Below are positions 2,487 to 43,776 of a DNA stretch of 64,000 bases, one piece after another. Position numbers and translations under genes: made by a program. The number at the start of each line of letters is the position of its first letter. Position 1 is the first letter of the stretch. A model generated the notes under the pieces. That model worked only from the letters and a program-made list of their open reading frames with translations. It was not told where the DNA came from and ran no database searches. The stretch spans positions 67,642,001 to 67,706,000 of the forward strand of contig OZ241830.1 in NCBI GenBank assembly GCA_965202585.1, given 5' to 3'. The DNA is from Thalia democratica. Its lineage: Eukaryota.

Positions 2487-3501
2487 GTCGGAAAAAATCT
2501 AAAGAAGCAGTGTTTGTAACGGCTTTTAAACTAAATAAACTTTTTCTACTAACAAACGTACCAAAACTAAGCAGAAAAATCGAAGATAATTTAACTGTTC
2601 AAAACGTATCCACTGCCAGATGTCATACATTTACAATCTAAACGTTCTATTTAAAAAAACGTTCAGCTTCATTGAACGTTGTTTTGTAGTGGTTGCTGAA
2701 ACTAAAAACTTTTTAGAAATAGAAGACATTTTGATTGCAAGAATAATGGGTAGTTCTGGATTAAAAATTACTTCAGAATTAGAAGTTTTCAATGCTATAG
2801 ATAGCTGGACTAGCTACAATACACAAAAAAGGAGCAAGCATGCAAAACATCTTTTTTTAAAGGTTCGGTTTCATCTTTTGCCCGATCGCACGTTGAAACA
2901 CGTTATTGATAAATCTTCATACTTTTCTAAAACTAAAGAACATGGTGCACTGTTCAATGCAGTTATGGGTAACAAAGAGAATTTTCCAAAAAAGTTGCTA
3001 AACAACTGCTACACCCATAGATATTGCGACCAACATGATTTTGATATAGTTATTTGTGGTGTTTTGGATGAAATATTAAAAAACTCAAACAAAGTGTTTC
3101 ACAAAACAATAGAAAATGTGAAATTTATTACTCCAAAGAAACAAAAAGCAAATTTTAACCGAGTGGTTTGTTTGAAAGGAGAAATTTATGCAATAGCAGC
3201 AGGTAACTACATGTTTAAGGAAGACAAAACTACCATTGAAAAATACATTGCAAAAACGAATACTTGGGAGAAAGTTTCACAAATAGACGACAACGGAGGA
3301 CGAAGTTCATTTTGCTGCTGCGCTTTCATGAACGAAATATATTTACTAGGCGGCCGTTACCGATGGTACGTGACCGACTCCTGCTTGAAGTTTGATGCAA
3401 CAAGCCGCGCTTGGAAGGGAGTCACGGAGATGAGCGAAGCGCGCCAGCATGCGGCGTGCGCCGTTTTCCAAGGAAGAATCGTAGTTTGCGGCGGGGAAGA
3501 T
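2487..3501 (+). pseudogene. BACK-Kelch protein, copy A (frameshifted, 3'-truncated)
   Basis: Near-identical to 5975-6991. A 4-nt deletion near 2612 splits ORFs 2456-2641 and 2620-3510. Homology ends abruptly after GGED at ~3501. BACK motif (SELEVFNAIDSW...VRFHLL) and kelch GG/Y/W motifs are present. Confidence 0.88.
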
Positions 3502-4156
3502 GTTTTGTAGTTTAACGAATTAAACTCGTGATTTCAGAGTATATCAAGTATATTTACTTGCCTATTTTCTTTAGGAATTTGTCTTAGTTGAGCTTTGAGC
3601 TGGCTTATACGAATGATTATAATTAAAACAAAATATTATTATCAAACTATAAAACTTCATCTAATAACAATCAAACGACGGTCTAAATCAATATTTATTT
3701 TACCTAAAAATAAAATCTATAGCTTAAGGTAGTACTGAAAAAGTAAGTTTTAATTTTTAAAAGTGAAAATCATGCATATTAATACTAAGATACTTTATAA
3801 AAAATACAAAAATATCACATAGATAACCTTCTTTATTTTATAATATTGTATACTTATTTGTCTATTAGATTAATGGTTAAAATATCCCAGCGCATGTGTC
3901 TCTTTAGTTTTTAATAAAAAACTCTGTTACAAATTTGTTTTTACTTTCAATGTTAATTTGAACCTTAAACCAACATAATAGCGTGAACAAATCTCTAAAG
4001 TTACATCTCTAACACTGAAATTATAGTATAAATAATACTTTACAAACAGAAAGTCCTCCGATTAAATGAACACGCTTCGTTCTGACCCAAGCACAGTTTC
4101 CAACTTTATACTCCTTTCTCATAAGAATATATATTTCAAATCAAGTTAACTGACAA

Positions 4157-5618: not shown

Positions 5619-7398
5619 ATGAGTTTTAAATTATCAAAAAATCGTAGAAAAAGCTTTAGTTTAGTTAAAGCATGCAAAAACAATGCTCGAAAGATAAATG
5701 AAAACAAAAATAAGATAAAAGTTTTTGAAACAGGTTTAATTTTTTGTTTTAAAATATGTATTTCGGAAGTATTTATTTATAAACCTTATGATTATTTTGT
5801 CAACTTCAGATTTGCTATTAAACCAAGTTACCTCAGGATTTTTAGAAAAAACACAATTTATTTAAACGCTTTAAATATATTTTTTAATTGCTTCATAAAT
5901 AACAAGTATATAGGAAATTTAAGTTAAGGTTTGAAAATAAAAGATGTTAACTAATACTTTTAAAACACTTTTAGGTCGGAAAAAATCTAAAGAAGCAATG
6001 TTTGTCTCGGCTTTCAAACTAAATAAACTTTTTCTACTAACAAACGTACCAAAACTAAGCAGAAAAATTGAAGATAATTTAACTGTTCAAAACGTATCCA
6101 CATACTGCCAGATGTCACACATTTACAATCTAAACGTTCTATTTAAAAAAACGTTCAGCTTCATTGAACGTTGTTTTGTAGGGGTTGCTGAAACTAAAAA
6201 CTTTTTAGAAATAGAAGACATTTTGATTGCAAGAATAATGGGTAGTTCTGGGTTAAAAATTACTTCAGAATTAGAAGTTTTCAATGCTATAGATAGCTGG
6301 ACTAGCTACAATACACAAAAAAGGAGCAAGCATGCAAAACATCTTTTTTTAAAGGTTCGGTTTCATCTTTTGCCCGATCGCACATTGAAACACGTTATTG
6401 ATAAATCTTCATACTTTTCTAAAACTAAAGAACATGGTGCACTGTTCAATGCAGTTTTGGATAACAAAGAGAATTTTCCAAAAAAGTTGCTAAACAACTG
6501 CTACACCCATAGATATTGCGACCAACATGATTTTGATATAGTTATTTGTGGTGTTTTAGATGAACATTTAAAAAACTCAAACAAAGTGTTTCACAAAACA
6601 ATAGAAAATGTGAAATTTATTACTCCAAAGAAACAAAAAGCAAATTTTAACCGAGTGGTTTGTTTGAAAGGAGAAATTTATGCAATAGCAGCAGGTAACT
6701 ACATGTTTAAGGAAGACAAAACTACCATCGAAAAATACATTGCAAAAACGAATACTTGGGAGAAAGTTTCACAAATAGACGACAACGGAGGACGAAGTTC
6801 ATTTTGCTGCTGCGCTTTCATGAACGAAATATATTTACTAGGCGGCCGTTACCGATGGTACGTGACCGACTCCTGCTTGAAGTTTGATGCAACAAGCCGC
6901 GCTTGGAAGGGAGTCACGGAGATGAGCGAAGCGCGCCAGCATGCGGCGTGCGCCGTTTTCCAAGGAAGAATCGTGGTTTGCGGCGGGGAAGATGACGAAG
7001 AAGAAAATTACTCGGAAACGGTCGAGTCGTATGACGTCATCACCGACACTTGGTCGCCGATGCCCAGCATGATGGAAAGCAAAAGCAGGCACAGCGCAGT
7101 TGCGGTGAGAAGCAAGTATTACGTCATCTGCGAACACGATTTTTGCGAGGTCTTTGACAGCGTTTGTAACAAGTTTGTTGCCTTAAAAGAACCGAATCTA
7201 AAATTTAGACGAATGAGTAAGGCTGTTTCAATTGGCAGTAAAATTTTTGTGTTTCGTTTTACTCAACCTAGTTTGGTGTTTATGATGTTGATAAAGACGA
7301 GTGGTCGGAGGAACTGTGTGAAATTACCAAAAATGTTCAATGTTTTTCCTGTACAGTTGTACCATTTTGTTAATAAATTTGAAGTATTAATTGATTAG
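5619..7398 (+). pseudogene. BACK-Kelch (KLHL-like, BTB largely absent) copy B; predicted exons 5619-5733 and 5975-7398; late frameshift
   Basis: The phase-1 donor ACAG|GTTTAA at 5733 joins in frame to the acceptor TTTTAG|GT at 5975. BACK domain plus kelch repeats (YLLGG, IVVCGG, VESYDVITDTWS). Comparison with copy C shows a 1-nt deletion near 7276 that shifts out the final YDVDKDEW...VPFC* repeat (ancestral stop 7371-7373). It could still be translated. Confidence 0.8.
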
Positions 7399-8805: not shown

Positions 8806-11800
8806 TCAAACGACGTTGTGTTTGAACAGCACGTAGTTGGCCATCGTGTGGTTGCCCGACTGCCGGTACATCAAGCTGAGGTTGAAGGCGATCTCGTGCC
8901 GGAGGTCGAAGCTGTCCTCGCACACCGCGTCGACCACAGTGGCAGGTGGTCCGCACTTCAACGCGTCCTCGTAAATGTGCACCGCAAAGTGGTTCAGCCC
9001 GATCTGGTGGAGGGCGCGCCCGATGTTGTACAGCGACTCCTGCTTGTTGTTCCGCAGCTGCCATTTCAAACATTATACAGGTTTGTTCAAGTTTTATTTG
9101 AAATATCAGCCTTTTCAGTTTATATTAAATAACATCATTACTGAAAGAAGGATATTTTGTTTACTTATCAAACAGAAGCTGACTCATGAACTTTCAAAAA
9201 TTTTAAGTAGCTTTTATTGTTATTGAATGCACAAAGTTAAAATTATGTTTGCGGGTATTTATATCCGAATGAAATAAGTGCGGGTTAAAACTGTACTTAC
9301 AAAAAACCTTTATATAGCTTTTATTAATCTTTAATAGTTAACCTATCAATGAAATATTACAAACAACTTTGTTTCATTAATTTCAAAAACGTCAGCTTTT
9401 AGACTTTATCAAAACAAATATTCTAGCAAGAAAACTAAACATTACCATTGAGGATCTTCAACGTAATAAACAGTCTATCAAAATAATCAAACCTGGCAAT
9501 ACTTGGCAAGGAGTGCGAAGGCTTGCGCGACATAAGTGTGCTTGTTACCGCAAGTTTTCTGCGTGAGTATGTGGCAGTAGCAAATTCCCACTATCAAATG
9601 CAGTTCCGGATTTTCTTGCTCCTGCAAGTATTCTTGTTATTTATCCGATAAGTTTATTCGTTAGCACTGACCAAAGTTGGTTTAAAAAAGCTACGTACAT
9701 TTTTTGAATGAATCTAAAGACATTTTTTAACTCTAAAAGTCTTACTTTAACTTACACATTCACTTCTTTAAAACATTACAAAAAGATACTATAAGAGTTT
9801 CAAAAATTTATGAATTTTGGATATAAGTAACAGAACGAGCTTAAAAAACTATATACTTTTGGTTTTTCTCAGAAAGGGATTGAAATTGTTAATAACGTTT
9901 AGTTTGCTTATAATTACTTTTTAAAACTTTACTTGGTTTTTAATAAAATATATAAGTGAAGTTTTATTATGTACTATTCTGTTTTTAATAACTAAAAATT
10001 TTCAAAAACAATTAAAGTACAGATACATCTACCAAAAATTGTCAAACTTCTTCTAGTAGTTCGATGTAATAATTAAGTGCAGGTCTGAAGTTATTAGATG
10101 CAATATCTCCATGAGCGAACATGCTTTGAAGCGGGTAAACTTTCTTATCTTGTACCTGTAATTGTATACTTTCTTTTCGTGAATGCTTTTAAAAAGAAAA
10201 CAGATTAACCACTTTGTTTTGCTAGTAATTAACTTTCGAAATAACACAAAAATAACTTATCATTATTGCGAAAAACTTTAATTTACTCAGCAATTAAAAA
10301 GTGGTAAACTTAATTAGTCATTAAAATAATACTTTACATTAGCACAAAACAAAAAAACGTCAACATAAGTTTACTTACTATAAAGCGCATTATTGTTGTA
10401 AAAACAATAATTATTGGAATGAAATAATAGATAACCAATACTGGGATATAGACAGTATTCAATAAACACGTATTTATTATCTTAGATGAAAAAAACCTTA
10501 AACGCAAAATTTTCTGCCTTGCAATTAATAATACTTTTCTGCAAAATTTTTTGACACAATACTGACCACCATGATTCTGTGGAGAAACCTGTGAGTGTTT
10601 TTGAGAACCTTCTGACTGTGAGACATCCTGGTGACCACCTGATTGAATATGTTCCACACGTGGTTCTGCACCGACGACTGGTCCTCCTTCTTCGATAAGA
10701 TCACCTTCCTTCATTTGATATACAACAGGTTTGTATGGAAACAATGCACAGTAAGACAGTGTTTGTATAAATGATGTTAGAATTTTAAACTTTTATTTAT
10801 AAAAAACACAGTCTTTATTTTGGATGCCATTTATAAAAGCACTAAAAGTTTTAATACAGTTTTTAATTTAAAAAATATATACTAAAATCCAAAATTAGCT
10901 AAAAAAACTGCTTGATAAGTTTATTTATGTTTGTAAAATTAAAATTTAATAAAAATACAGCAAAGTATTCATTATATCAATAAACAACACAAATAACTTG
11001 ATTCAAACAAACTTGAGTATTTTGAAGGCGTAATAGTACCACCCGCTCAACAGGCTGAACCTGAACAAAATAACTTCCAGCTTGCTTCTTGAAATTTTCG
11101 CGCGCGAAAAGAAGTTTTTCTCCTTCATAACGTGGTCGCTTATCAAACAGGCCTCCTTGTATCTTTTGCACGTGTTGAGCAGGTTCAGCAACTCCTTGAT
11201 TGATAAGGTTGATTATATTGGTAGAGTCTTAGCTCGTAAAATTTTTTGTACTAAAGAAATAATATGCAGCAAAAATATTAAAACACTTTGGAATATTAAG
11301 TTACAAACTATTTGTATTTAAGAAAGATTTTTTTGGTATGATTTAACCTTATGTTAAACTTAGCTTATCTCACGGCATACGAAGGTCCAGGCTTAAGCTC
11401 TGTAGACTTTCGCTGATGTTTTCGTTAAAAAAGAATTGATATACTTTTCAAACTTTTGTATAAACTTTGAATCAGTTTTTAGTAAATATGGAGTGTTTAT
11501 ACTGACATAAAACAACAAAAGATTATGTTCTAAAACTATCCCTTATCATTTCCGTAGAAGCAAACATTAACTTATCCAAAAACATTTATAGAAGAAAGTT
11601 ACTTATAATTTAATACTAACCTGAATGTGTTATAATTTTCAACTTAAATAAGTTTTTAATAATACAGTGCTTATTGACTTATCCGGATAAGCATTTTTCC
11701 AGACAAGTACAAAATATAGTGTTTTTATAAAATAATATAACTGCTGTAATTTATGCAATGTAAAGTAAATAATAATAACTCAGCCATTTTCTTCCTTTTT

Positions 11801-14800
11801 CTGCTTTAAATTCCTTACACTTTACTTTTCAAAATGTCGTGAAAAGTCGACTCGCCCATGCTAAAATGCTTTATTATAAAAGACTTTAAACATTGTTTTT
11901 CCATCTTTTTACAAACTTCTAGTTTATTTTTAAAGCTTATTGCAACTCGTGTTCTTTTTGTTTTTGTAACTTGTCTATTTCTGAAACCTTGTATGTTGAG
12001 TATGTCAAACTTAAAACTTTTTTAATAATAAAAAAAAAATTATGTACCTCATCTTAAATAAATATTGTTTCAATTAAGAACTTTTGATAGTTTGAATTAA
12101 AAACCAAACATAAAAAAACTTTTATATATTAATTTTGTAAAAAATTAAAAACATTATTTTTTAAAACTGATTTACTTTACATATAAAGGTTTCTAATAAC
12201 TAAACTAGTTTTAAATAAAATTGTACGTATGCTTTACTAGTATTATTACATCATAATTATGTAATAAATTGCAGAACTTATAAAATCACTTAAAAATTTT
12301 TCACAGCATCAAAGCTTAAACATTAGTATGTATTACACAAAAATGTTTGTGTTTAATACTGAATTTATTTATTTATTTTCTTATCGACTGAAATTTTCCG
12401 TATAAGTGAATAAGCATTGTACAACTAAACTATTTTTAAATTAAAAATTAGACTCATATTTCAAATTCGCTTTTAAGTATCAAAAGCAAAACTAAAAGAA
12501 TTTCAAATACACTAGCGTTCTAAAACATACCAATGAAACTTTATCAAAACAAACCTTGTAAAAGTCGATCCACTGCCTCTGCTTGAAGACCTGCCAGTCG
12601 GCTTTCAGGTACAATTCCTCGTCAATCCTCTGCTTGCCCGCCCTCTTGCAAGTCACTTTGATCTCGCCTGCGAACGGGTTGGTTGTTTTCCTACTTCGCT
12701 TCACTATTGACAGCTGAAAAATTTGAACGTTGAACCAGTTTATTTGTACTTATTTTAAAAGTTATCAAGTACCCAGACAGTATGAGAAAATTAAAGTTTG
12801 ATAATTCGGTAAAGACCTTGTAAATAATATATTTTTTGTTTACACAAAGTAAAGTGAGAAATGAAGAATCAGCATGATATGTAGAAGATAAAATAAGTAA
12901 TTTTTTTAAGAAAAATTTAACAGATAAAAAAATAAAACTTGCATTCAATATGGTCGTCAAAGGTTTTTTTGACAAAATTTTCTAGGTTTTCTAAACTTAT
13001 TGCAGATATTTTAAATAACAATATTTTGGTTTCTTTTGGTTTGAAAGTAAATTTAAGGTAAACAACTGATTTAAAATGTATAACAACATTGAAAAGACAC
13101 TGTAAATCTACTTAAAATATGTTAAAAAAGCACTTTATTAATATTTTCTTTTTCTATATGATAGATTTTTGATATATAATCGAAATTTAATTTCTTTGCA
13201 TGTTAAGTTTTTTTAAAATTCCAGATTTTTTAATGATTTTTGTTCGAAATTCCAGATTTTCCAGGCTTTTCCCAGATTTCTCAAACTCCAGGATTTTTTT
13301 ACAAAATTGTCAAATGTCAGGTTTTTTAACAACTCTGATACGAAAATAACCAAACAAAGTACTTTTATATTTATTGGAAAACAAGAAAACTGTCTGTACT
13401 AAGCAGAAAAAGTACTAACTGAAATTAACCTCAGTTTTGAAAGTAGTTTTCAGTCTGTTGGCGAGCATAATCAATACAACATCCGCTGCAGCTGCTAGCT
13501 TCTTTCTGTGATTAATCATGTTTATGAGCATTAAGGGTATAAGTTAGTTAAGATTTAATAAACATTTTTTTTACTTCCAGTAACTTTAAAAATAAATAGT
13601 CTATCAGTTGGTATTAGTGATCTATCGTATCCTAATTTTGTGAATTGGTTTAAGCACTTATAATTGAGCAAAATATTTCTTTAATTTAAAATTTTCTTTA
13701 AAGCAGTGTTTCTAATAATATATGTATTAAAACTCTATGTTTTCATAATTGGTTATAAAACTTCGGTGCAATTTTTATTATTAAGAAAAACATTCTACAA
13801 AAAAAAACATTTTTGAAAACATTTTAACTTAATAATTTAACCACAATAAAATAATCTACTGTAAAAAGTATTAATTATACAATTACAAAACAACTAATGT
13901 TCGGTTTTTTTTCTATAGTTTCTACACATTAAGCGTTTCATCAGAACAGTAACAGAGTTAAAATAAACCTTTTTTAAAGAATCAAAAAATTTCACATTAT
14001 GTCGTTTCAAATAAATTTAAATAACTTTGGTTGGCTAATGCATTAGCCAACTAAAACTATTCCAATTTATTTGAAACGTCATAATGTGTATTTCTTTGAT
14101 CCTTAAAAAAATATGCTAACTTTGTTATTGTTCTGATGAAACTACAGTAAACAAACCGAACATTAGTTTTTTTTTGTATTATTAATATTAATCTCTACTT
14201 TCGTATCAAAAAATTTGGCTATCGAATAAAAAAACAGCTCCAAATACTGTTTTAAGTACATAAGTAATCTTCTTAAAATTATCTTTTCCTCATCTAGATT
14301 TTATTATACATATTTATTAGTAATTTTTAACTTTGCTAAAGCTAAACAGAACGTAAGGAAAAAATTAGACTTCAAATTAGGGTTTCATTATAAAAAAATA
14401 CTATTGAACTTTGAATAGCTAACGATTCTGAAATTCTATTTAAGCTGATAAAAGTGTTCTGGTAACTCGAAACGGCACAGCTTGACTTCTTAAACATAAA
14501 AACAAACGCGCTAACTTAACATTCAACAAATAACAAACTTTTTATTGGGATGCTGGCCCCACTTTTTGAAAACTTGGAACCTGCAATTCAGCAGCCTCAT
14601 CTGGTCTTTCGGTGAAATTTCATTTTCATTCTCCTCTTTCTCGGCTCCATCTAGTGTCTAAAGTATTATCAAAAAATTAGACACTTTACAAAATCTAAAA
14701 ACTTTCAAACAAAAGCAGACTAATTAAACAACCAAAACACCTCGATGGCGACGCGGTATTCCCCGGTGTCGAGCAAGATGGCGGCCAGCTCCAGCCTGAT

Positions 14801-15024
14801 GTCGACCGAGTCCTCCGCCGATATCTGCAGGCACTTGAAAAAATTCTCCTTGGCGCTCTTGTAGTCGTTGAGCTTCAGCAGCGACATGCCCTTCAGCTTG
14901 AACAGCTCCTTGCTGGTGGAAAAGTGCGCGAAGTGGTGGACTTCCAATTCCTCGATCAACCGCAACGATTCGACGTACTGGCCCGCTTCGAAGCACGCCA
15001 CGCAAACACTTATCTGCACATCCG
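8806..15024 (-). CDS. GTF3C3: General transcription factor IIIC subunit 3 (TFIIIC102/Tfc4), C-terminal half only, copy 1; nine exons
   Basis: Exons 15024-14741, 14657-14539, 13505-13430, 12713-12555, 11194-11013, 10708-10567, 10155-10048, 9621-9493 and 9057-8806. All GT-AG, phases consistent, no internal stops. Peptides match my recollection of GTF3C3: HVWNIFNQV, THRFLHRIM, QESLYNIGRALHQIGLNHFAVHIYEDAL, DLRHEIAFNLSLMYRQSGN. The exon 5/6 junction has two in-frame alternatives. Confidence 0.92.
11665..12419 (-). mobile_element. pogo/Tigger-type (Tc1/mariner) internally deleted DNA transposon in a GTF3C3 intron
   Basis: TIRs CAGTGCTTATTGACTTATCCGG / CCG(T/G)ATAAGTGAATAAGCATTG with TA on both flanks. 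Minus strand ~11815-11990 reads KERVAISFKNKLEVCKKMEKQCLKSFIIKHFSMGESTFHDILKSK, a CENP-B N-terminal/psq-type HTH. Confidence 0.85.
12953..13337. mobile_element. CAGGG-terminal MITE family member (degenerate)
   Basis: Shares internal sequence (aatttaaggtaaa...tataacaacattgaaaaga; ttccag/ttccagg repeats) with 15128-15537 and with the intact-ended copies at 55970 and 59552. Right end ...aacaactctg. Copy at ~41610-41996. Confidence 0.65.
13870..14190. mobile_element. Foldback/MITE-like long inverted repeat
   Basis: aactaatgttcggttt (13892) / aaaccgaacattagtt (to 14168); inner arms tttcatcagaac / gttctgatgaaa; perfect central palindrome TTGGCTAATGCATTAGCCAA 14031-14050. Copy at ~42525-42925. Confidence 0.85.
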
Positions 15025-15127
15025 CTGTTTGTCAGCATGTTAGAGTTTGTTGATTTATTTGTTTGGTGCCAGTATTATAAAGTAAATTGCTTAATTTCGA
15101 AAAATACTTGTTACGAAAAACAAAAAG

Positions 15128-15537
15128 CAGAGTTGCTAAATGATTTTAGCAAGTTTTCTCCAGGTTTCTAAAATTAGACGTTTTACGGTCTATTTTCGGT
15201 TTAAAATTAAGTTTAAGGTAAAAAACTGTGCCTAATAGTATAACAACATTGAAAAGATTTCTAAAAGCTTCTTTAAATTTGTTTTTTTATTAAAAAATTT
15301 TGAAGATGACAAAAATGTTTATTTATAAGATAGATTATTTATTTGCAATTAAAACTTTACTACTTGACATTTAAAAGTTGTTTAAAATACCATACTTTTC
15401 AGGTATTTTTAGTGATTTTTACTCTAAATACCAGGTTTTTTTTAAAATTACTTTAATTCAAGGATTTTTCATTTTTTTTTTACTTTGAATTTTCAAATTA
15501 CAAATTTTTCCTGGATTCGAGGTTTTTTGGTAACCTT
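15128..15537. mobile_element. CAGGG-terminal MITE family member
   Basis: Starts cagagttgctaaa (cagggttgccaaa in unit 2 at 43800) and ends tggtaacct. Copy at 43800-44230. Confidence 0.7.
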
Positions 15538-16094
15538 AAAAAAGACATAACTTAACCCTCATAACTTTAAATATATTAGTTTACTGCAAAATAAAACAGT
15601 CTTAACATTGCAGGTATTTTTATAACTTTATATATATAATTATGTATACAATATTAACAACTAGTTTTTTTTTTGCTTAATTTTAAATAGCACTATTTTT
15701 AATTTCAAATAGGCCACATAAAAAATTCAAAGTAAATTTTGAGATAAAAGCCAGCGAAGTTGGTGAGCTCAGTAAGTTCCTTAAAGAAAGAGCAAACCAA
15801 TAACGCAAAAAAAAAAAGACTATTTCACTAAAAATCTATCTTCTCCTTAAAATACATTCTACTTTTTTACAGAAAGTCCATTATCAATATTTAAATATTT
15901 TTTAAATACAAAAATATTTTCATTAAAAAAAATATTTTTAATATTTTAAAATTTTTAACATTCAAAGTCTTAAAACTATAATAGGAACTATTCCTAAAAA
16001 ATTTTGAGTCTTAAATTTTACAAATGAAATAAAAAAAGATAGATATTTTGTGATTTTAAAAATTCTGAGAAAATTGACAATGAAAAATTTGTAA

Positions 16095-16200
16095 CTTTTA
16101 ACAAAAAATAAAACATCTCAAAATTCTATAATTTTTTACAAAAAATAAAACATCTCAAAATTCTATAATTTTTTACAAAAAATAAAACATCTTAAAATTA
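16095..16200. repeat. ~37-bp tandem repeat, about 3 units
   Basis: tttttacaaaaaataaaacatctcaaaattctataat repeated; also at ~44785-44890. Confidence 0.85.
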
Positions 16201-16407
16201 AAATAAATTTTTATAATATCAAACAGTGGACTCATAACATGAAAAAGTAAAAATTAAGTTTTTGGAATTTTTCTTTGAAAATTTGTAGGTAGAAAGTCAA
16301 GGTTCTAAACTAAACTGTAAAAAGAACTATATATATATAACAACATTATTAATATTTTTTTAACATCTCTATCTACTTTAAGGTTTTTTTTTTCGCTAAT
16401 AAGTTAA

Positions 16408-17093
16408 GGGCATAGGGGTGTCCGACATTTTTTTTTACAAAAATAACATTTGACCTTATATGAAAGCTTAAAGTACAAACAACAAGCCAGTTTTTATAGA
16501 ATTAAAAAAATTTATTTAACTTTTGAGATATTCTAATTTTCATAAAAAGTTTCCGATACAAATGAAAAATTGAAAGTTTTTCTAAGTCAATTTTCTTGGA
16601 AATTTAAAACATCACTAAAAACGTATCTTCTCCTTCATTTTTTGCGATAGAGACCATAAATTTTCAGGAAACGTTCCTTTTGTAGTTTAAAAAAATTGAA
16701 AGTTGGAGTTTTTTAAATATTAAAAAAATAACTTTAGATAAGAATAAAACAAAAAAAAAATAGGTGGTTTTTTTTTTAATAAAAATTTTATTTTTCAAAA
16801 TTAAAAAAATTTCAATCTTTTTAAAATTTAATAATACACTTTTTTAGAAAATTTGAAGAACATTGCTTTAAAAATGAAGGAGGAGATAGATTTTAAGTGA
16901 AATGGTCTTTTTTTGTGTTTTTAGTTTGTGCCTTTCATTAGAAACCTATTGATGTCACTGACTTTGACTGCTCATATTTTTAAAAATACTTTGAATTTTT
17001 TCAAACTGTTAAATTAAAAATGTCTAATAGCTCGGATAAAACTCTATAAAATAAGATCAACTTGTAAAAATCAAGGAGGACCCCCCTATGCCC
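16408..17093. mobile_element. TTAA-flanked non-autonomous DNA transposon (Kolobok-like or piggyBac-like)
   Basis: TIR GGGCATAGGGG(T/G)GTCC at both ends; TTAA at 16404-16407 and 17094-17097; internal inverted segment tatcttctccttcatttt / aaaatgaaggaggagata. Confidence 0.85.
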
Positions 17094-17613
17094 TTAAGCT
17101 TATTGTGTAAGTTAAGAATATTTCATATTCTTGTAATAATTCATAAAACTTCGAAAAGTTGAAAAACAATAGTGTCAAGTAGGGATGGGAAATTTATGAC
17201 CTGTAGACCAAATCTGTTAGCAAACAGAAATATGTGGCTGTGAAGTATTTTTAGCTTTGCAGAAAACAAATAAAATTAAGCTCTTACTAACAATAACTAT
17301 ACAATTTTCTTTTAATTTATTTTTAGTACACAGTTGTTTTTAATGAACCAGTAATTTAAACAATTAGTTTCAAACATTTTTTTTTCTTTGTGGTTGTAAA
17401 AATATTCAAAACTACATAGCCCACTAAAACTGCTTTTTAAAAAGTCTAGCCAAAGAGAGAATTTTTTAAGTAAATTTGTTCTAATAACTAAAAAAGTTTT
17501 CCACCCTTATTACAACAGTACAAAACTTTCTTAGACAAAAATGTAGAATTTGTGCAAACCAACTATGATACATAAAAACAATGATAATATTTATTTGACA
17601 AAACAAAACCAAC

Positions 17614-17749
17614 TTGTTTTCATAGGAAGTAGAACACATCTGGTTGTATTCTTGCTGCTCAGCATAAGTGTATGTGGAGCTGACAGGCTTCAATTCCAGG
17701 CTGACTTCTGTTGAGTGTGGCTCCTCTGCATCCATTTGTTCTTCACCTT
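17614..17749 (-). other. Candidate coding exon upstream of the GTF3C3 block (MDAEEPHSTEVSLELKPVSSTYTYAEQQEYNQMCSTSYENK)
   Basis: GC-elevated patch with AG and GT at the borders. The unit-2 copy differs by an in-frame 9-nt indel (MDVSQAEE). No homology recognised and the splice link to exon 15024 is not established. Confidence 0.45.
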
Positions 17750-19710
17750 CTTATTGATATTAATTTATTAGATAAGTTTACTAACTATTCTTAAATTGCA
17801 TTAGTAAAACATTTACTATATACATTAGTATTTGTGTATATTGTTTTATTAAAACAACAATGATCAAATATAAAAAGATGTTTTTTCTAAATATTTAAAC
17901 TGTAGTAGAGAATTTCTGTACAGTATTTTTCTCTGAATACTGACCACCAAAACTGTCAAATTTTGTTATTAAAACCAAGTGCATGCAGTTTTTGAAACAA
18001 TAGTTCTAAGTGTACCTCTAATATATAAATACTTTAAATTATCAAAAATGTGTATTTGCTTTATTAAGAAGAATCTAAAAAATAATTGCAAACAAAAGGT
18101 ATGCCGGCCAAAAAATTAGTTACCCCAAAATCACATATTTTTCATCTTAAACAGTAATAAAATCACTTATACATGTCCTAGACTTATACTTATTGATTTG
18201 GTCTTAAGACGTATTAACTTCTTTTCATGTAATATGACATCATAATCACCCTAAATACACAAACGTTGTCTGTAAAATAATGATTTTTGGAATATTGAAA
18301 AGCATAGCTGGTCAGTGATTTTAATAAGAAAAAATAATGTAAAACAAAAATTTCAGGTTATTTACTTACCTTTAAAAGTTTAGGTGATGTGGTGTGCATG
18401 TCAACGGGATATTTGATGTTGTAGTTCATTTAGCTTTAAGTGTTTAAAAAACCCTTGAATATTTATTTAATTAGCACACAACAAATTAATGAGATATTAA
18501 AAAGTTATGATTTATTATAGGCAAGATAATGTTGTATAGCATTGAACATTAAATTAATGATTGCAAAGTAAAGACTTTACAAATAAATAACATTGCAAAA
18601 TAAAACAAAAATTGTATCATTTAGCATTAACACTTAACATTGTTGCAAATGACTGATACTTTTAGAAGTTTTTGCATAAAAATCTGTGTACACACAAGTT
18701 ATAGTTGTGTGAGTGAGAATCTATTATAAAAAGAATTAAATTGTTTAGTATACTTGAACTTTGTTTCAAAAACACTCTACAGAGTTTTGTTTGTCTTGTA
18801 ACATATGGACTTTGTGGCAATATAAAAGTAGTTATTTTTCAAACTCATTCATGAATATTTTGATAAGTGTGTCTTTATTTAGCATTCACTCACTATGCAC
18901 AAAATGGTTTTTTTATTTTCTACCTGCTTCAAAAAGTTGTAATACCAATGACTACAAAAACTGTATAGTTTTGGCAAATATGGCAAAACGATTCAAATTA
19001 AATAATAACTAAAATGATTTTGCAAAAGTTAAATTTAATGCTATTACCTGATGAGATAAAGGTAAATAAAATAAATCTTGTACAAATTGTTAAGTAATAA
19101 ACATGTTTAAAACAAAAAGAAAACAATTTTGTAAAATTAAGAGTTAAACGCTTAATTTATATGTCTTTATAAAGTTGTCAATGTAATTTATATGAGCTTA
19201 ATGAATTACTTTAGCTTAAATATTAAACAATATGTTAAACCAGTTATCGCCAATGTAGTAAAAAAGGTAGAAACTACGAAAAACTTTATAAAGAATGAAT
19301 AACAACAATGGAATTAAAACAAATTATTTTTTACAAAAAAAAAGTTCAAGGTTTAACATTATGTAAATAAAAAGAATTTTATGTTCGAAAAAGCTAAAAA
19401 CCACCCTGCCATGCTAAGATAGTGTTTCAATTTGTAGTTTTTATGAATTCTCTAAAGTCTTACATTTTAATGTGACATCACAATAAAATAGTACTTTGCA
19501 AAATATTTTTTTCAATGAATATTCTTTTGAGAAAAGCACTTGTAGTAAAAACACCTTAGATGCTGTAGGTGTAAAGTAACTCTTTTTTTTTTTTTTTAAA
19601 CTGTTTATGTGAGCTTTGTACAATACTTAAGCAAACTCTATTTGATTGTCAATATTTTTGAAGATAAAACTTGATGATTGTTGCTCATTTTATCTTCTAA
19701 AACTCTTATA

Positions 19711-20400
19711 TTTCTACATTGTGTGAGTAAGTTTAAGAAAGCATTTGACCTAGTTTGGCATTCAACAGTCTTGAAAGTTTATGTTGATAATTTATATTAT
19801 TTTTCTCATGCAATACCTTTGAAGAAATTCTTTATTTAATCTCTAGTTCATCACAGAATCATATATCTTTATTCATAAAAAGTGTGATAAGTTTTTATAC
19901 TTACAAGTATGGCATGTACAGACAAGATCAATTGGCTTGAATGCACTTACTTGATGCAAAAAATCATCAAGAGGCTTTAAAAACTTGCATATCAGTCTCT
20001 GAAAGCTTTGAAACATCATTATAAAGTGAAATAAGTAGAGAAAAATTCAAAATAATTGTTATATTTCTATATTTTGTGAGTAATTTTAAGAAGGTATTTG
20101 ACCTAGTTTGGCAACCAACAGTCTTGAAATTTATGTTGATAATTTATATTATTTTTCTCATGCAATACCTTTGAAAAAGTTCTCTATTTAATCTTCTAGT
20201 TCATCACAGAATCATATATCTTTATTCATAAAAAGTGTGATAAGTTTTTATACTTAGAAGTATGGCATGTTCAGACAAGATCAATTAACTTGAAGGCACT
20301 TACATGATGCAAAAAAAAACCATCAAGAGGCTTTAAAAACTTGCATCTCAGTCTTTGAAATCTTTGAAACATCATTGTAAAGTGAACTGAGCAGAGAAAA
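19711..20400. repeat. Local tandem duplication of ~355 bp within a decayed coding-like region
   Basis: gtgagtaa..ttaagaa..tttgacctagtttggca...gagaaaaattcaaaa occurs twice; also at ~48330-49020. Confidence 0.85.
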
Positions 20401-35250: not shown

Positions 35251-35984
35251 CAAATTTTAACCGAGTGGTTTGTTTGAAAGGAGAAATTTATGCAATAGCA
35301 GCAGGTAACTACATGTTTAAGGAAGACAAAACTACCATCGAAAAATACATTGCAAAAACGAATACTTGGGAGAAAGTTTCACAAATAGACGACAACGGAG
35401 GACGAAGTTCATTTTGCTGCTGCGCTTTCATGAACGAAATATATTTACTAGGCGGCTGTTACCGATGGTACGTGACCGACTCCTGCTTGAAGTTTGACGC
35501 AACAAGCCGCGCTTGGAAGGGAGTCACGGAGATGAGCGAAGCGCGCCAGCATGCGGCGTGCGCCGTTTTCCAAGGAAGAATCGTGGTTTGCGGCGGGGAA
35601 GATGACGAAGAAGAAAATTACTCGGAAACGGTTGAGTCGTATGACGTCATCACCGACACTTGGTCGCCGATGCCCAGCATGATGGAAAGCAAAAGCAGGC
35701 ACAGCGCAGTTGCGGTGAGAAGCAAGTATTACGTCATCTGCGAACACGATTTTTGCGAGGTCTTTGACAGCGTTTGTAACAAGTTTGTTGCCTTAAAAGA
35801 ACCGAATCTAAAGTTTAGACGAATGAGTAGAGCTGTTTCATTTGGCAGTAAAATTTTTGTGTTTCGTTTTACTTAACCTAGTTTGGTTGTTTATGATGTT
35901 GATAAAGACGAGTGGTCGGAGGAACTGTGTGAAATTACCAAAAATGTTCAATGCTTTTCCTGTACAGTTGTACCATTTTGTTAA
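35251..35984 (+). pseudogene. Kelch copy C (5'-truncated, nonsense)
   Basis: Begins mid-exon (caaattttaaccgag) directly after the ctgactaacaacggac motif. CAA>TAA at 35874-35876; the frame beyond reads PSLVVYDVDKDEWSEELCEITKNVQCFSCTVVPFC*. Confidence 0.9.
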
Positions 35985-37417
35985 TAAATTTGAAGTATTA
36001 ATTGAGTAGCTAAGTGCCAAATAATTGTATAAATTGTACAGAAATCTAAGACAAAATTCATTCAAAAACATCTTTATTAAAGCAACAAACAAGTAAAATC
36101 GATTTCGGCTAACGCTTTTCAATTACTTTAGTTAGCAACTAATTTTAAGATTAAATTTTGAGTATATAAATAGTTAGAGGTTACATCAGAAAAATCAATT
36201 AAGACTAATTAGCATAATTGAGCAAAAATTAATTAAACATTCACAATTCATAAATGCATATACAAAACAGTTTATCAGTAATTTAACTAAGATAAGCAAC
36301 ATTAAAAATAAAATAAAAATAAGCGACAAAATTCAAATAAAATCTATAACAACTTATAAAGGTTAGATTTATAAACGTATTGTTGCTTACACAAATTAGG
36401 TTTACATGTTTTTATAAATAGAGATTCTAAAACACTTAGGTGATAATCGTTACGAGCTTTTTTACTCTTTATTTTCGTAATCGTCTTTTTTTTTCGACTG
36501 ACTAACAACGGACGATTCATAGCAAAATGTTTTTATCATATTCGTTTAGATCAGAGTAGTACAAAGCTGTATGCAATAAAGAAGTTTAATATGACTAATA
36601 ATTTAATTTTGCATAAAAACATGATAAATCATAAGATACATTTTGTAGTAGAAATCAATTTAGAACATTTATAAATTGAATCATTCAAGTCAACTTAAAT
36701 ATCGCAAACAAGTTCAAACTCACTTAAGAACCAAAAATACCCTACAAACTTGTAACTTTTTAAAAAGGCTCTTACTAAACTATTATACAAAAAGATTCAT
36801 ATTTTTGATAGCAGATTGATAAAATAAAAAAAAAACTAAGAAGATAAAGTTTCAAAATTTATAATACAAAACTTTAAAAATTTTAATTATAATGTGTTCA
36901 AGGCTTGTAAATGCTTATATGGCATAAAAACCTACATTTTATGCAATAATTTATAAAAATAGTGTCTTATTTCTAGAAGTACAAATAGCATAAAGAAGAG
37001 TTACTCATTATTTTAAATCATTACTGGTTTATAATTACTTTTATTGTTTGAGACAGCAAACGAAGGAAAAATACAAATGGTTTTACTTCACACATTTTTA
37101 TCAGTTTAAATTTTTAGTATAAAAAAAACTAGGTAGCACAAAATTACAATTTCCTAAAACTTCAATTTTCTAAACGAAACTTCCAATAAAAAAAATAATT
37201 TTGAAAATCAACACATCTATAAAAAAGAGTGAAAATCTTAAGAGCTCTTCTGCAAGCTTATCGAAGGAAAAAAATCTAAAATAACTGAAGGTTTGTGCTT
37301 AACAACAAAATTTTTCAAACGGCTCTGATAAAAGTAGGAATAAAGTTCAACAAAAATTTACTAAAAAGGCATAAGCAGCAAAACTAAAACGGTCAATTGA
37401 AATTGAGACGTGCAGCA

Positions 37418-40400
37418 TCAAACGACGTTGTGTTTGAACAGCACGTAGTTGGCCATCGTGTGGTTGCCCGACTGCCGGTACATCAAGCTGAGGTTGAAGG
37501 CGATCTCGTGCCGGAGGTCGAAGCTGTCCTCGCACACCGCGTCGACCACATTGGCAGGTGGTCCGCACTTCAACGCGTCCTCGTACATGTGCACCGCAAA
37601 GTGGTTCAGCCCGATCTGGTGGAGGGCGCGCCCGATGTTGTACAGCGACTCCTGCTTGTTGTTCCGCAGCTGCCATAACATTATACAGGTTTGTTCAAGT
37701 TTTATTTGAAATATCATGCCAACTGGCCTTTTCAGTTTATATTAAATAACATCATTACTTGAACGAAGGATATTTTGTTACTCATTCAAACAGAAGCTGA
37801 CTCATGATTTTTTATAAAATTTTAAGTTATTTTATATGTTTATTGTTATTTAATGCACGAAGTTAGATTTATGTTTGTTTATATCCGAATGAAATAAGTG
37901 CGGGTTAAAAACTGAATTACGAAAAACCTTTATATAGCTTTTAATAATCTTTAATAGTTAACCTAACAATGAAATATTACAAACAACTTTATTTCATTAA
38001 TTTCAAAAACGTCAGCTTTTAGACTTTATCAAAACAAATATTCTAGCAAAAAAACTAAACATTACCATAGAGGATCTTCAACGTAATAAACAATCTTTCA
38101 AAATAATCAAACCTGGCAATACTTGGCAAGGAGTGCGAAGGCTTGCGCGACATAAGTATGCTTGTTACCGCAAGTTTTCTGCGTGAGTATGTGGCAGTAG
38201 CAAATTCCCACTATCAAATGCAGTTCCGGATTTTCTTGCTCCTGCAAGTATTCTTGTTATTTATCAGATAAGTTTATTCGTTAGCACTGACCAAAGTTGG
38301 TTTAAAAAAGCTACGTACATTTTTTGAATGAATCTAAAGACATTTTTTAACTCTAAAAGTCTTACTTTAACTTACACATTCACTTCTTTAAAACATTACA
38401 AAAGATACTATAAGAGTTTCAAAAATTTATGAATTTTGGATATAAGTAACAGAACGAGCTTTAAAAACTATATACTTTTGGTTTTTCTCAGAAAGGGATT
38501 GAAATTGTTAATAACGTTTAGTTTGCTTATAATTACTTTTTAAAACTTTACTTGGTTTTTAATAAAATATATTAGTGAAGTTTTATTATGTACTATTCTA
38601 TTTTTAATAACTAAAGTTTTTCAAAAACCAATAAAGTACAGATACATCTACAAAAAATTGTCAAACTTCTTCTAGTAGTTCGATGTAATAATTAAGTGCA
38701 GGTCTGAAGTTATTAGATGCAATATCTCCATGAGCGAACATGCTTTGAAGCGGGTAAACTTTCTTATCTTGTACCTGTAATTGTACACTTGCTTTTCGTG
38801 AATGCTTTTAAAAAGAAAACAGATTAACCACTTTGTTTTGCTAGTAACTAACTTTGAAAATAACACAAAAATAACTTATCATTATTGCGAAAAACTTTAA
38901 TTTACTCTGCAATTAAAAAGTGGTAAACTTAACTAGTCATTAAAATAATGCTTTACATTAGCACAAAACAAAAAAGGTCAACATAAGTTTACTTAATATG
39001 CAGCGCATTATTGTTGTAAAAACAATAACTATTGGAATAAAATAATAGATAACCAATACTGGGATATAGACAGTATTCAATAAACAGGTGTTTTTTATCT
39101 TAGTTAAAAAAACTTTAAACGCAAAATTTTCTGCCTTGCAATTAATAATACTTTTCTGCAAATTTTTTTGACACAATACTGACCACCATGATTCTGTGGA
39201 GAAACCTGTGAGTGTTTTTGAGAACCTTCTGACTGTGAGACATCCTGGTGACCACCTGATTGAATATGTTCCACACGTGGTTCTGCACCGATGACTGGTC
39301 CTCCTTCTTCGATAAGATCACCTTCCTTCAATTGATATACAACAGGTTTGTATGGAAACAATGCACAGTAAGACAGTGTCTGTATAAATGAGGTTAGAAT
39401 TTTAAACTTATATTTATAAAAAAAACACAGTCTTTATTTTGGATACCATATATAAAAGCAAAAAAAGTTTTAATACAGTTTATAATCTAAAAAATATATA
39501 TTAAAATCAAAAATTAGCTGAAAATACTGCTTGATAAGTTTATTTATGTTTGTAAAATTAAAAGTTAATAAAAATGCCGCAAAGTATTCATTATATCAAT
39601 AAACAACACAAATAACTTGATTCAAACAAACTTGAGTATTTTGTAGGCGTAATAGTACCACCCGCTCAACAGGCTGAATCTGAACAAAATAACTTCCAGC
39701 TTGCTTCTTGAAATTTTCGCGCGCGAAAAGAAGTTTTTCTCCTTCATAACGTGGTCGCTTATCAAACAGGCCTCCTTGTATCTTTTGCACGTGTTGAGCA
39801 GGTTCAGCAACTCCTTGATTGATAAGGTTGATTATATTGGTGGAGTCTTAGCTCGTAAAATTTTTTGTACTAAAGAAATAATATGCAGCAAAAAATTAAA
39901 ATACTTTGGAATATTAAGTTATAAACTATTTGTATTTAAGAAAGATTTTTTTTTGGTATGATTTAACCTTATGTTAAACTTATCTCACGGCATACGAAGG
40001 TCCAGGCTTAAGCTCTGTAGACTTTCGCTGATGTTTTTGTTAAGAAAGAATTGATATACTTTTAAATTTTTGTATAAACTTTGAATAAGTTTTTAGTAAA
40101 TATGGAGTGTTTATACTGTCATAAAATAACAAAAGGTTATGTTCTAAAACTATTCCTTATCATTTCCGAAGAAGCAAACCTTAACTTAGCCAAAAACATT
40201 TATAGAAGAAAGTTACTTATAATTTAATACTAACCGGAATGTGTTATAATTTTCAACTTAAATAAGTTTTTAATAATACAGTGCTTATTGACTTATCCGG
40301 GCATGTTTGGCAATTCTGTAAAGGTATACGGATAAGCATTTTTCCAGATAAGTACAAAATATTGTTTTTGTAAAATAACATAACTGCTGTAATTTATGTA

Positions 40401-43400
40401 ATGTAAAATAGATAATAATAGCTCAGCTCTTCTTTTTCTGCTTTAAATTTCTTACACTTTACTTTTCAAAATGTCGTGAAAAGTCGACTCGCCCATGCTA
40501 AAATGCTCTATTATAAAAGACTTTAAAACATTGTTTCCCATCTTTTTACAAACTTCTAGTTTATTTTTAAAGCTTATTGCAACTCGTGTTCTTTTTATTT
40601 TTGTAACTTGTCTATTTCTGAAACCTTGTATGTTGAGTATGTCAAACTTTTAACTTTTTGAAAATAAAAAAAAAATTATGCACCTCATCTTAAATAAATA
40701 TTGTTTCAATTAAGAACTTTTGATAGTTTGAATTAAAGACCAAACATAAAAAAACTTTATATATTAATTTTCTAAAAAACTAAAATTAAAAACACTATTT
40801 TTTAACACTGATTTACTTTACGTATAAAGGTTTCTAATAACTAAACTAGTTTTGAACAAAATTGAACTTAAGCTTTACTAGTATTATTACGTCATAGTTA
40901 TGTATTAAATTGCAGAACTTATAAAATCATTTAAAACTTTTCCACAGCATCAAAGTTTAAAAATCAGTATGTATTACACAAAAATGTTTGTGTTTAATAC
41001 TGAATTTATTTATTTATTTTCTTCTTGACTGAAATTTTCAATATAAGTGAGCGTCCGGATAAGTGAATAAGCATTGTACAACTAAACTATTTTTCAATTA
41101 AAAAAATAGACTCATATTTCAAACTCGCTTTCAAGTGTCAAAAGCAAAACTAAAAGAGTTTCAAATACACTAGCGTTCTAAAACACACCAATGAAACTTT
41201 ATCAAAACAAACCTTGTAAAAGTCGATCCACTGCCTCTGCTTGAAGACCTGCCAGTCGGCTTTCAGGTACAATTCCTCGTCAATCCTCTGCTTGCCCGCC
41301 CTCTTGCAAGTCACTTTGATCTCGCCTGCGAACGGGTTGGTTGTTTTCCTACTTCGCTTCACTATTGACAGCTGAAAAATTTGAACGTTGAACCAGTTTA
41401 TTTGTATCTATTTCAAAAGTTATTAAGTGCCCAGACAGTATGAGAAAATTAAAGTTTGATATTTCGGTAAAAACCTTGTAAATAATATATTTTTTGTTTA
41501 CACAATGTAAAGTGAGAAATGAAGAATCAGCATAATATGTAGAAGAATAAAATAAGTAATTTTTTTAAGAACAGAATTAACAGATAAAAAAAATAAAACT
41601 TGCATTCAGTAAGGTCGTCAAAGATTTTTAGACAAAATTTTCCACGTTTTCTAAACTTATTCCAGGTTTTTTAAATAGCAATATTTTGGTTTCTTTTGGT
41701 ATAAAAGTAAATTTAAGGTAAAAAACTGATTTAGAATGTATATCAACATTGAAAAGACACTGTAAATCTACTTAATATATGTTGAAAAAATTTATTATTA
41801 TTTTCTTTTTCTATATGATAGATGTTTGATATATAATCGAAATTTCATTTCTTTACATGTAAAGTTTCTTTAAAATTCCAGATTTTTTAGTGATTTTTGT
41901 TCGAAATTCCAGATTTTCCAGGCTTTTCCCAGATTTCTCAAATTCCAGGTTTTTTCTTACAAAATTGTCAAATGTCATGTTTTTTAACAACTCCGATACG
42001 AAAATAACCAAACAAAGTACTTTTATATTTATTGGAAAACAAGAAAACTGTCTGTACTAAGCAGAAAAAGTACTAACTGAAATTAACCTCAGTTTTGAAA
42101 GTACTTTTCAGTCTGTTGGCGAACATAATCAATACAACATCCGCTGCAGCTGCTAGCTTCTTTCTGTGATTAATCATGTTTATTAGCATTAAGGGTATAA
42201 GTTAGTTAAGAATTAATAAACATTTTTTTATTTCCAGTGACTTTTTTTTAAATAGTCTAACAGTTGGTATTAGTGATCTATCGTATCCTAATTTTGTGAA
42301 TCGGTTTAAGCACTTATAATCGAGCAAAATATTTCTTTAATTTAAAATTTGCTTTAAAGCAGTGTTTCTAACAATATATGTGTTAAAACTCCATGTTTTC
42401 ATAATTGGTTATAAAACTTCGGTGCAATTTTTATTATTAAGAAAAATAATCTACAAAAAATACACATTTTTGAAAACATTTTAACTTAATAATTTAACCA
42501 CAATAAAATAATCTACTGTAAAAAGTATTAATAATACAATTACAAAACAACTAATGTTTGGTTTTTTTTCTATAGTTTCTACACATTAAGCGTTTCATCA
42601 GAACAATAACAGAGTTAACATAAACCTTTTTTTAAAAATCAAAAAAGTTCACATTATGACGTTTCAAATAATTTTAAACAACTTCATTTGGCTAATGTTA
42701 TAAACAACTTCTGTACAAACTTATTTGTTCTTTTAAAATACTTATTTTGGTTGTCAAAGACAGTTATTTTCAACATTAGCCAACTAAAACTATTCCAATT
42801 CATTTGAAACGTCATAATGTGTATTTTTTTGATCCTTAAAAAAAAGATGCTAACCTTTTTATTGTTTTGATGAAACTACAGTAAACAAACCAAACATTAA
42901 TTTTTTTTTTGTATTATTAATATTAATCTCTGCTTTCGTATCAAAAGATTTGGCATTTATCGAATAAAAAAACAGCTCCAAATACTGTTTTAAGTACATA
43001 AGTAATCTTCTTAAAACTATCTTTTCCTCATCTAGATTTTATTATACAAACTTATTAATAATTTTTAACTTTGCTAAAGCTAAACAGAACGTAAGGAAAA
43101 CATTAGACTTCAAATTAGGGTTTCATTATAAAAAAAATACTATTGAACTTTAAATAGCTAACGATTAATTGATGAATTCTGAAATTCTATTTAAGCTGAT
43201 AAAAGTGTTCTTGTAGCTCGAAACGGCACAGCTTGTCTTCTTAAACATAAAAACAAGCGCGCTAACTTAACATTCAACAAATAACAAACTTTTTATTGGG
43301 ATGCTGGCCCCACTTTTTGAAAACTTGGAACCTGCAATTCAGCAGCCTCATCTGGTCTTTCGGTGAAATTTCATTTTCATTCTCCTCTTTCTCGGCTCCA

Positions 43401-43776
43401 TCTAGTGTCTAAAGTATTATCAAAAAATTAGACACTTTACAAAATCTTGAAAACTTTCAAACAAAAGCAGACTAATTAAACAAGCAAAACACCTCGATGG
43501 CGACGCGGTATTCCCCGGTGTCGAGCAAGATGGCGGCCAGCTCCAGCCTGATGTCGACCGAGTCCTCCGCCGATATCTGCAGGCACTTGAAAAAATTCTC
43601 CTTGGCGCTCTTGTAGTCGTTGAGCTTCAGCAGCGACATGCCCTTCAGCTTGAACAGCTCCTTGCTGGTGGAAAAATGCGCGAAGTGGTGCACTTCCAAT
43701 TCCTCGATCAACCGCAACGATTCGACGTACTGGCCCGCTTCGAAGCACGCCACGCAAACACTTATCTGCACGTCCG
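37418..43776 (-). CDS. GTF3C3: GTF3C3 C-terminal half, copy 2; nine exons
   Basis: Exons 43776-43493, 43408-43290, 42163-42088, 41371-41213, 39813-39632, 39325-39184, 38774-38667, 38241-38113 and 37669-37418. Same lengths and phases as copy 1, with no stops or indels. Confidence 0.92.
40279..41076 (-). mobile_element. pogo/Tigger deletion derivative, copy 2
   Basis: TA-CAGTGCTTATTGACTTATCCGG ... CCGGATAAGTGAATAAGCATTG-TA; HTH remnant frameshifted. Confidence 0.85.

Follow-up and report, generated by a model that had tools for sequence, protein, structure and literature searches.

Tandem half-gene copies of the TFIIIC subunit gene GTF3C3 in Thalia democratica probably make a shortened factor that joins its complex yet cannot recruit the polymerase machinery

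TFIIIC is regarded as a fixed six-subunit factor. Two kinds of known system come close to the one described here: the extra-TFIIIC (ETC) sites, where TFIIIC sits on DNA without TFIIIB or RNA polymerase III (Pol III) and serves chromatin organisation, and truncated paralogues that interfere with complexes, such as the microProteins or the Id proteins directed against basic helix-loop-helix (bHLH) factors. We analyzed a stretch of 64,000 nucleotides (nt) from Thalia democratica (GenBank assembly GCA_965202585.1, 802 Mb and AT-rich; contig OZ241830.1, labelled C6 here; C6:67642001-67706000, hereafter the window) and found that it belongs to a tandem array in which at least 10 copies of the back half of GTF3C3 stand on the chromosome. 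GTF3C3 is named TFIIIC102 in human and tau131 or Tfc4 in yeast, and its partners GTF3C5 and GTF3C6 correspond to tau95 and tau55. We put the probability that these half-genes are selected and encode an assembly-competent, TFIIIB-blind form of GTF3C3 at roughly 0.55.

In yeast, tau131's N-terminal TPR array comprises residues 131-573, with a "ring" at 390-430, and together with the disordered N terminus it recruits Brf1 and then Bdp1 (PMC7528018). The C-terminal helical/TPR domain (612-1025) packs on TPRs 6-10, grips residues 161-236 of tau95 in a groove and scaffolds tauA; the same study states a dual role for TFIIIC (PMC7528018). The half-genes share homology and the order of parts with GTF3C3/tau131 from human residue ~422 (yeast ~468) to the C terminus, including that C-terminal domain. 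By alignment, they keep the equivalent of yeast ~468-573, i.e., the last TPRs of the N-terminal array, and lose the acidic, disordered N terminus and most of the array that recruits Brf1 and Bdp1, namely its first TPRs and, by yeast numbering, the ring. A previous interpretation made from the letters of the window (the sequence-only reading) had contrasted an N-terminal TPR array that engages Brf1/Bdp1 with a C-terminal part that builds tauA with tau95. The C-terminal domain is indeed kept, but the split is not clean, since the last TPRs of the N-terminal array are retained (PMC7528018). Unlike GTF3C3 elsewhere, the gene is present here in at least 10 such copies beside full-length paralogues in one genome. 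We know of no multi-copy GTF3C3 in other genomes, and we found no paper on GTF3C3 paralogues or truncated forms. The predicted product would resemble the ETC sites in that TFIIIC would occupy DNA without Pol III initiation; however, ETC sites are set by the DNA site with a normal TFIIIC, whereas here this property would be built into a putative subunit variant. With microProteins and Id proteins it would share a retained assembly surface, a lost effector part and the titration of partners, but those are small and usually single-copy, whereas the present case concerns half a subunit of a general transcription factor and a large tandem array.

The window consists of two head-to-tail units (~3-32854 and 32876-63897; units 1 and 2, or W1 and W2) that are ~92-98% identical over large blocks in a self-comparison. 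By searching over splice sites and reading frame, we rebuilt the gene on the minus strand. Both units gave the identical set of nine exons, 1451 nt in total, with 482 open codons and AG/GT at all junctions, which reproduces exactly the exons proposed by the sequence-only reading.

14741 to 15024, minus strand: exon A of unit 1, the first retained exon; acceptor ACAG/CG, phase 1, profile positions 422-513; its first ATG is the in-frame Met46
14539 to 14657, minus strand: exon B of unit 1, from the frame and splice search
13430 to 13505, minus strand: exon C of unit 1, from the frame and splice search
12555 to 12713, minus strand: exon D of unit 1, from the frame and splice search
11013 to 11194, minus strand: exon E of unit 1, profile positions 619-679
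10567 to 10708, minus strand: exon F of unit 1, profile positions 686-714
10048 to 10155, minus strand: exon G of unit 1, profile positions 715-749; a second possible acceptor is located at 10185, 30 nt upstream
9493 to 9621, minus strand: exon H of unit 1, profile positions 748-793
8806 to 9057, minus strand: exon I of unit 1, the last exon, stop included; matches human GTF3C3 (8clk_D) residues 806-882 (E = 1.4e-19) and yeast tau131 957-1022 (E = 1.3e-5)
37418 to 43776, minus strand: exons A to I of unit 2, namely A 43776-43493, B 43408-43290, C 42163-42088, D 41371-41213, E 39813-39632, F 39325-39184, G 38774-38667, H 38241-38113 and I 37669-37418

The profile positions refer to an orthologue profile built from 39 full-length sequences (875 positions). 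In a search of the window it matched six exons of each unit, in order, over positions 422-874 of 875, and gave no match for positions below 422 on either strand or in any frame. This is in agreement with the earlier statements that the first exon is in phase 1 and corresponds to the middle of GTF3C3 (human ~422, yeast ~468, by alignment via an orthologue as bridge) and that no N-terminal TPR exons lie upstream of it. Exon A alone, compared with solved structures, matched only generic TPR proteins. A protein database search returned no close full-length relative (best identity 58%); the only close matches, at 91-80% identity, were three short fragments of DNA type that came from marine metagenomes. 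The half-genes are GTF3C3 paralogues by descent, and their predicted proteins depart from the family definition in one respect, as the N-terminal TPR array is incomplete.

The feature proved to be larger than the sequence-only reading had stated, comprising an array of at least 12 units, full-length paralogues and three classes of deletion. The last exon of GTF3C3 has 18 copies in the whole genome, 12 of them on C6 at 67.516-67.935 Mb and all on one strand, one at C6:34.770 Mb and the remainder on small contigs. The array lies on one contig, at 67.51-67.95 Mb of C6, with a repeat unit of 29-34 kb, and the window units are consecutive members of it. Exon A has 16 copies genome-wide, whereas the first TPR exon has only 5, at C6:34.779 Mb, C6:67.897 Mb and C6:67.945 Mb and on contigs C511 and C45. 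Upstream of each half-gene sits the 3' end of the next unit. This arrangement disposes of two alternatives left standing before: that the two units are alleles is refuted by their being consecutive members of the array on one contig, and that the window holds a normal gene whose 5' exons lie beyond its end is refuted by the array, by the 3' ends of neighbouring units upstream and by the 6.3-kb deletion described below.

Four consecutive units at the left end of the array (L015-L018; C6:67516295-67627031) are identical over all nine exons at a spacing of 33,578-33,580 bp, a pattern that points to very recent expansion or else to an effect of the assembly. Together with the presence of several copies on small unplaced contigs, this is what one would expect if the units were haplotypes or a falsely expanded repeat, yet we find such an artefact scarcely credible for the array. 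Between the window units there are large indels and a divergence of ~5%, and the neighbouring Kelch gene is structured differently in the two. Moreover, half of the sampled words recur, in many variants, in contigs from three independent sequencing runs under two organism labels; one of these contigs spans the deletion junction.

A genome-wide search for N-terminal exons, proposed by the sequence-only reading, revealed full-length copies at one end of the array and 33 Mb away from it. The locus ~33 Mb from the array, at C6:34.77 Mb (the parent), has N-terminal exons matching profile positions 144-425. Its model, in which the N-terminal exon borders are approximate, is an open 800-amino-acid protein with an ATG 2 nt after an acceptor, and residues 28-800 align end to end with orthologues, including a protein named Ciona savignyi GTF3C3. 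Two further copies, u887 (C6:67887723) and u935 (C6:67935063), form the transcriptionally upstream end of the array; they are collinear with the 34.77 Mb gene, open over all 800 codons and have their own intact 3' halves. The N-terminal TPR array is present in all three. Contig C511 appears to represent the second haplotype at 34.77 Mb. A JGI environmental contig of 3011 nt (P0002) carries a 358-amino-acid open frame whose unbroken alignment covers residues 432-797 of the parent model (46% identity); because the frame is uninterrupted over such a length, this suggests a transcript or an intron-poor gene of a distant relative.

The N-terminal exons are missing from the window units because of a defined deletion of 6.3 kb, which removed coding exons 2-7. 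Its breakpoints are identical in five distinct units (W1, W2, L015, L019 and L022), in which the sequence of u887 at 7182 is connected to that at 13507 by ~26 nt of filler.

15694 to 15721, minus strand: deletion junction of unit 1, from the comparison with u887
44382 to 44409, minus strand: deletion junction of unit 2, with the same breakpoints as unit 1

A read contig of an independent run (X1 record 5, 15534-15782) crosses the junction of unit 1. Next to the shared breakpoints the units have diverged to the same degree as elsewhere. The deletion therefore predates their divergence, and on the same ground we rejected a recent spread of the deletion through an old full-length array. The window type descends from one copy that lost 6.3 kb and then multiplied, with introns diverging by ~5%. 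Two other units complete the three deletion classes: the unit at C6:67744288 has a smaller loss (u887 8913-13293) and kept two extra exons, and that at C6:67776265 shows a further, complex rearrangement. A distal breakpoint shared between C6:67744288 and the window type was considered and rejected, as the breakpoints differ on both sides. Between u887 and u935 we observed an extra fragment (C6:67907730-67908011; u887 18049-19998, equal to C6:67905771-67907720) that carries exon A and the exon B/C region and is 98% identical to window 12787-14731. The last exon was not found with it, and we therefore take it as a further partial unit.

We analyzed selection on the half-genes by counting tests. 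The exons of units 1 and 2 differ at 11 sites in 1451 nt (6 synonymous and 5 non-synonymous) with no gaps, whereas the introns show 207 differences over 4443 aligned sites plus 44 indel events (Fisher P = 9e-15), in good agreement with the differences previously counted by eye. We then considered private derived changes, defined as bases found in truncated copies and absent from u887, u935 and the 34.77 Mb gene; because they are absent from all full-length copies, they arose in the truncated ones. They amounted to 32 in 1451 exon positions compared to 243 in 2440 cleanly aligned intron columns (P = 8e-23), so that since the deletion exons have changed ~4.5 times more slowly than introns (2.2% versus 10%). 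The slowing, 4- to 6-fold, extends to the intron bases adjacent to the splice sites: the rate was 3.0% in the 10 intron bases beside exons and 9-12% from 11 nt outward. This step lies within ~10 nt of all 17 exon borders, which excludes conversion tracts as the cause of the slow exons and indicates that the splice signals are kept. Base composition was rejected as well, since the contrast holds among G/C sites (exons 3.0%, introns 14.0%) and among A/T sites (1.4% and 8.6%) and the GC-rich make-up of the exons is thus no explanation. Across 21 pairs of truncated copies there were no exon indels, compared to 23-44 intron indel events in 20 of the pairs and 13 in the remaining, very close pair (L021-L022). 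Synonymous changes made up 18 of the 32 private changes, the other 14 being non-synonymous, where 11.45 synonymous ones were expected from the mutation spectrum (P = 0.009). The ratio of non-synonymous to synonymous substitution (dN/dS) across copies, a check the sequence-only reading had suggested, was 0.10-0.51 in pairwise comparisons. Each of the 12 C6 copies has retained every AG/GT site and an intact set of 482 codons; in contrast, the BACK-Kelch gene of the array units is whole in unit 1 and broken in unit 2. From these counts, purifying selection on the nine exons as spliced sequence since the truncation is well supported, and the selected exons are probably also translated. The earlier suggestion of an intact, possibly functional C-terminal half thus receives strong support from the selection tests.

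These data bear directly on the possibility that the units are non-functional relics, left by a duplication cut inside GTF3C3 and passively amplified, with the apparent constraint coming from exchange with full-length copies or from local mutation rates. We regard this as unlikely, although it deserves to be taken seriously. Our searches recovered neither a start codon nor a 5' exon nor any RNA, and the array is structurally messy, with its three deletion classes and transposon insertions. In addition, the intron tree hints at exchange between units, some AT-rich non-coding stretches are also <1% diverged between the window units, and the C45 copy is frameshifted. However, conversion tracts cannot give a rate step so close to every exon border, and the slow-exon effect holds inside each base class. 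The counted changes arose in truncated copies and are nevertheless enriched for synonymous ones, the flanks of the shared deletion are diverged, so that the truncation is old relative to the divergence of the copies, and no exon indel was seen in any pair.

Selection could also act on RNA rather than protein, if the units worked as a spliced regulator, a decoy or a source of small RNA against the full-length GTF3C3 mRNAs. The conservation of exons together with splice-proximal bases, synonymous sites that are slower than introns, the lack of a usable 5' start codon and the high copy number would all fit such a role. We nonetheless consider it improbable, because of the synonymous excess, pairwise dN/dS values of 0.1-0.5 and the 482 codons that stayed open in all 12 copies, although an RNA would tolerate three-base or other indels.

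The window type has kept ~0.9 kb of the ancestral upstream region, including an exon that we call Ex1.

17614 to 17735, minus strand: Ex1 of unit 1, the retained ancestral upstream exon, 122 nt, with an ATG in strong context and donor AACAA/GTTGGT in phase 2
46293 to 46423, minus strand: Ex1 of unit 2, 131 nt, phase 2
17775 to 17835, minus strand: upstream island 1, which hardly varies among six truncated units, lies 40-100 nt upstream of the Ex1 ATG and is conserved in the parent as well; a candidate promoter or element of the 5' untranslated region
17915 to 17974, minus strand: upstream island 2, nearly invariant among six truncated units

The two invariant islands fit a retained promoter. 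Within Ex1, unit 1 and the 34.77 Mb gene match at every base of a 65-nt segment (17635-17699, minus strand), compared to an identity of 89-98% for the coding exons; the same segment in unit 2 (46314-46378, minus strand) has one change, and both Ex1 indels are multiples of three. In the full-length gene Ex1 is also out of frame with exon 2, while in the less-deleted unit C6:67744288 an in-frame join to exon 6 is possible, with a one-in-three chance of coincidence. No phase-1 donor with a good consensus was found in Ex1.

Every truncated unit retains its own conserved upstream region, which argues against the idea that the exons are spliced to N-terminal exons elsewhere, either by read-through from the upstream full-length units or between separate pre-mRNAs, to yield full-length GTF3C3 with alternative 3' halves. 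Exon A has retained the phase-1 acceptor to which, in the full-length gene, exon 7 is joined through its phase-1 donor, the full-length units do lie upstream in the direction of transcription, and the selection on exons and splice sites fits such splicing just as well as it fits a stand-alone product. But the distance to the nearest full-length N-terminal exons runs from ~100 kb for the closest truncated unit to as much as 380 kb for the farthest, the full-length units have intact 3' halves of their own, and 3' halves that are only ~1% different in protein would bring no gain. We therefore give this splicing poor odds.

For the assembly-competent, TFIIIB-blind product, the likeliest if speculative route to an mRNA 5' end would be spliced-leader trans-splicing onto the unpaired acceptor of exon A, with translation from Met46. 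The first ATG of exon A is this in-frame Met46 in every copy compared, unit 1 having in addition a private upstream ATG that opens three codons, and a start there would give a 437-amino-acid product. The Ciona spliced leader, a 16-mer, goes onto acceptors that lack a donor upstream, and trans-splicing affects about half of the genes in Ciona (PMC1488885). The 18-mer ATTCTATTTGAATAAGGT, which consists of this leader followed by GT, occurs 1048 times in the T. democratica genome versus 22 times for the reversed control, which points to ~1000 spliced-leader RNA genes or copies of them and, with the AT-rich composition, agrees with a tunicate source. Trans-splicing with a start at Met46 is thus plausible as judged from sequence. 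The copies of leader plus GT are scattered over all large contigs, with regular ~15-kb steps on C26.

If the half-genes are transcribed, spliced and translated, they would give a 50-55 kDa protein of ~437-482 amino acids that still contains the complete C-terminal domain together with the last TPRs of the N-terminal array. Differences around the last exon, among others, yield predicted peptides that tell the array from the 34.77 Mb gene. Such a product would compete with full-length TFIIIC102 for GTF3C5/GTF3C6, resulting in a tauA/TFIIIC that binds DNA yet is blind to TFIIIB. The outcome might be a dosage-dependent dampening of Pol III transcription or TFIIIC-only chromatin sites. As selection has kept the half-genes intact, a shortened factor is probably made that, by analogy with the yeast and human proteins, would join its complex yet fail to recruit the polymerase machinery.

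Several observations weigh against this interpretation. At the 5' end, the frame upstream of exon A closes after 2 codons, and neither a start codon nor a right-phase 5' exon upstream of exon A was found in our searches. Ex1 joined to exon A is out of frame, because its donor is in phase 2 and exon A needs phase 1, and meets a stop after 145 codons. A search of all right-phase open AG...GT segments for a bridging exon between Ex1 and exon A gave 35 low-complexity candidates, none convincing. As for expression, the three sequencing runs that contain the sequence are all DNA-like with unspliced contigs, and no RNA run was found. The spliced exon H-I junction was absent from an exact scan of metagenome contigs, as was the junction of leader and exon A, which says little, and no processed copy of the H-I junction was found in the species' own genome at up to 3 mismatches. 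The synonymous excess, the one coding-specific test, is only moderately significant at P = 0.009, and synonymous sites are themselves slower than introns (~6% versus 10%). The intron tree is star-like with full-length copies intermixed with truncated ones, indicating recombination or conversion between units, and the unplaced C45 copy contains frameshifts. Finally, competition for GTF3C5/GTF3C6 appears the likeliest action from the yeast and human structures only.

A stronger version is that the array is a dedicated multi-copy gene family for a TFIIIB-blind TFIIIC102 variant, a stand-alone tauA scaffold that would divert GTF3C5/GTF3C6 and TFIIIC into silent complexes. We advance this only tentatively and hold it to be rather doubtful. 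If true, it could serve to control Pol III output as a whole, to set up TFIIIC sites of the insulator type or to act as a decoy for mobile elements whose targets are Pol III genes, and the nested deletions that spared all but the N-terminal arm would be steps of adaptation, not decay. We also considered amplification of a partner subunit and rejected it, since one Tau95-type (GTF3C5-like) locus was found, on C2.

Besides the half-gene, each unit carries a BACK-Kelch gene placed tail to tail with it, and very high-copy repeats lie inside an intron of the half-gene and at the deletion junction.

5944 to 7398, plus strand: intronless gene with BACK and Kelch domains and no BTB domain, 484 amino acids; a partial copy lies at 2620-3510 and the unit 2 remnant at ~35253-36009
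15647 to 17174, no strand assigned: very high-copy, transposon-like repeat recognised by read depth, adjoining the deletion junction

The BACK-Kelch gene is whole in unit 1, but unit 2 and several other units have a version truncated at residue ~232 that carries a stop and a frameshift. Its family gave 5638 first-look candidates genome-wide, with dozens of open copies of ~475 amino acids on many chromosomes, often clustered. The repeats at window 12973-13354, 15074-15264 and 15647-17174 have read-word depths 10-500 times those of their neighbours in the three independent runs. A scan of the whole window against Rfam at gathering thresholds returned zero families, and we found no tRNA genes within the window and no Pol III gene or known RNA in the unit.

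Overall, at least 10 kept copies lack most of the TPR array that recruits TFIIIB, the kind of deletion that one would engineer in order to separate assembly from TFIIIB recruitment. If expressed, the half-genes would offer a natural handle on the tuning of Pol III output and on TFIIIC at DNA without Pol III, and they would be a clear case of a truncated duplicate becoming a possible regulator of its own complex. Even if not expressed, the array would serve as a test bed for the interplay of selection, gene conversion and amplification in tunicate genomes.

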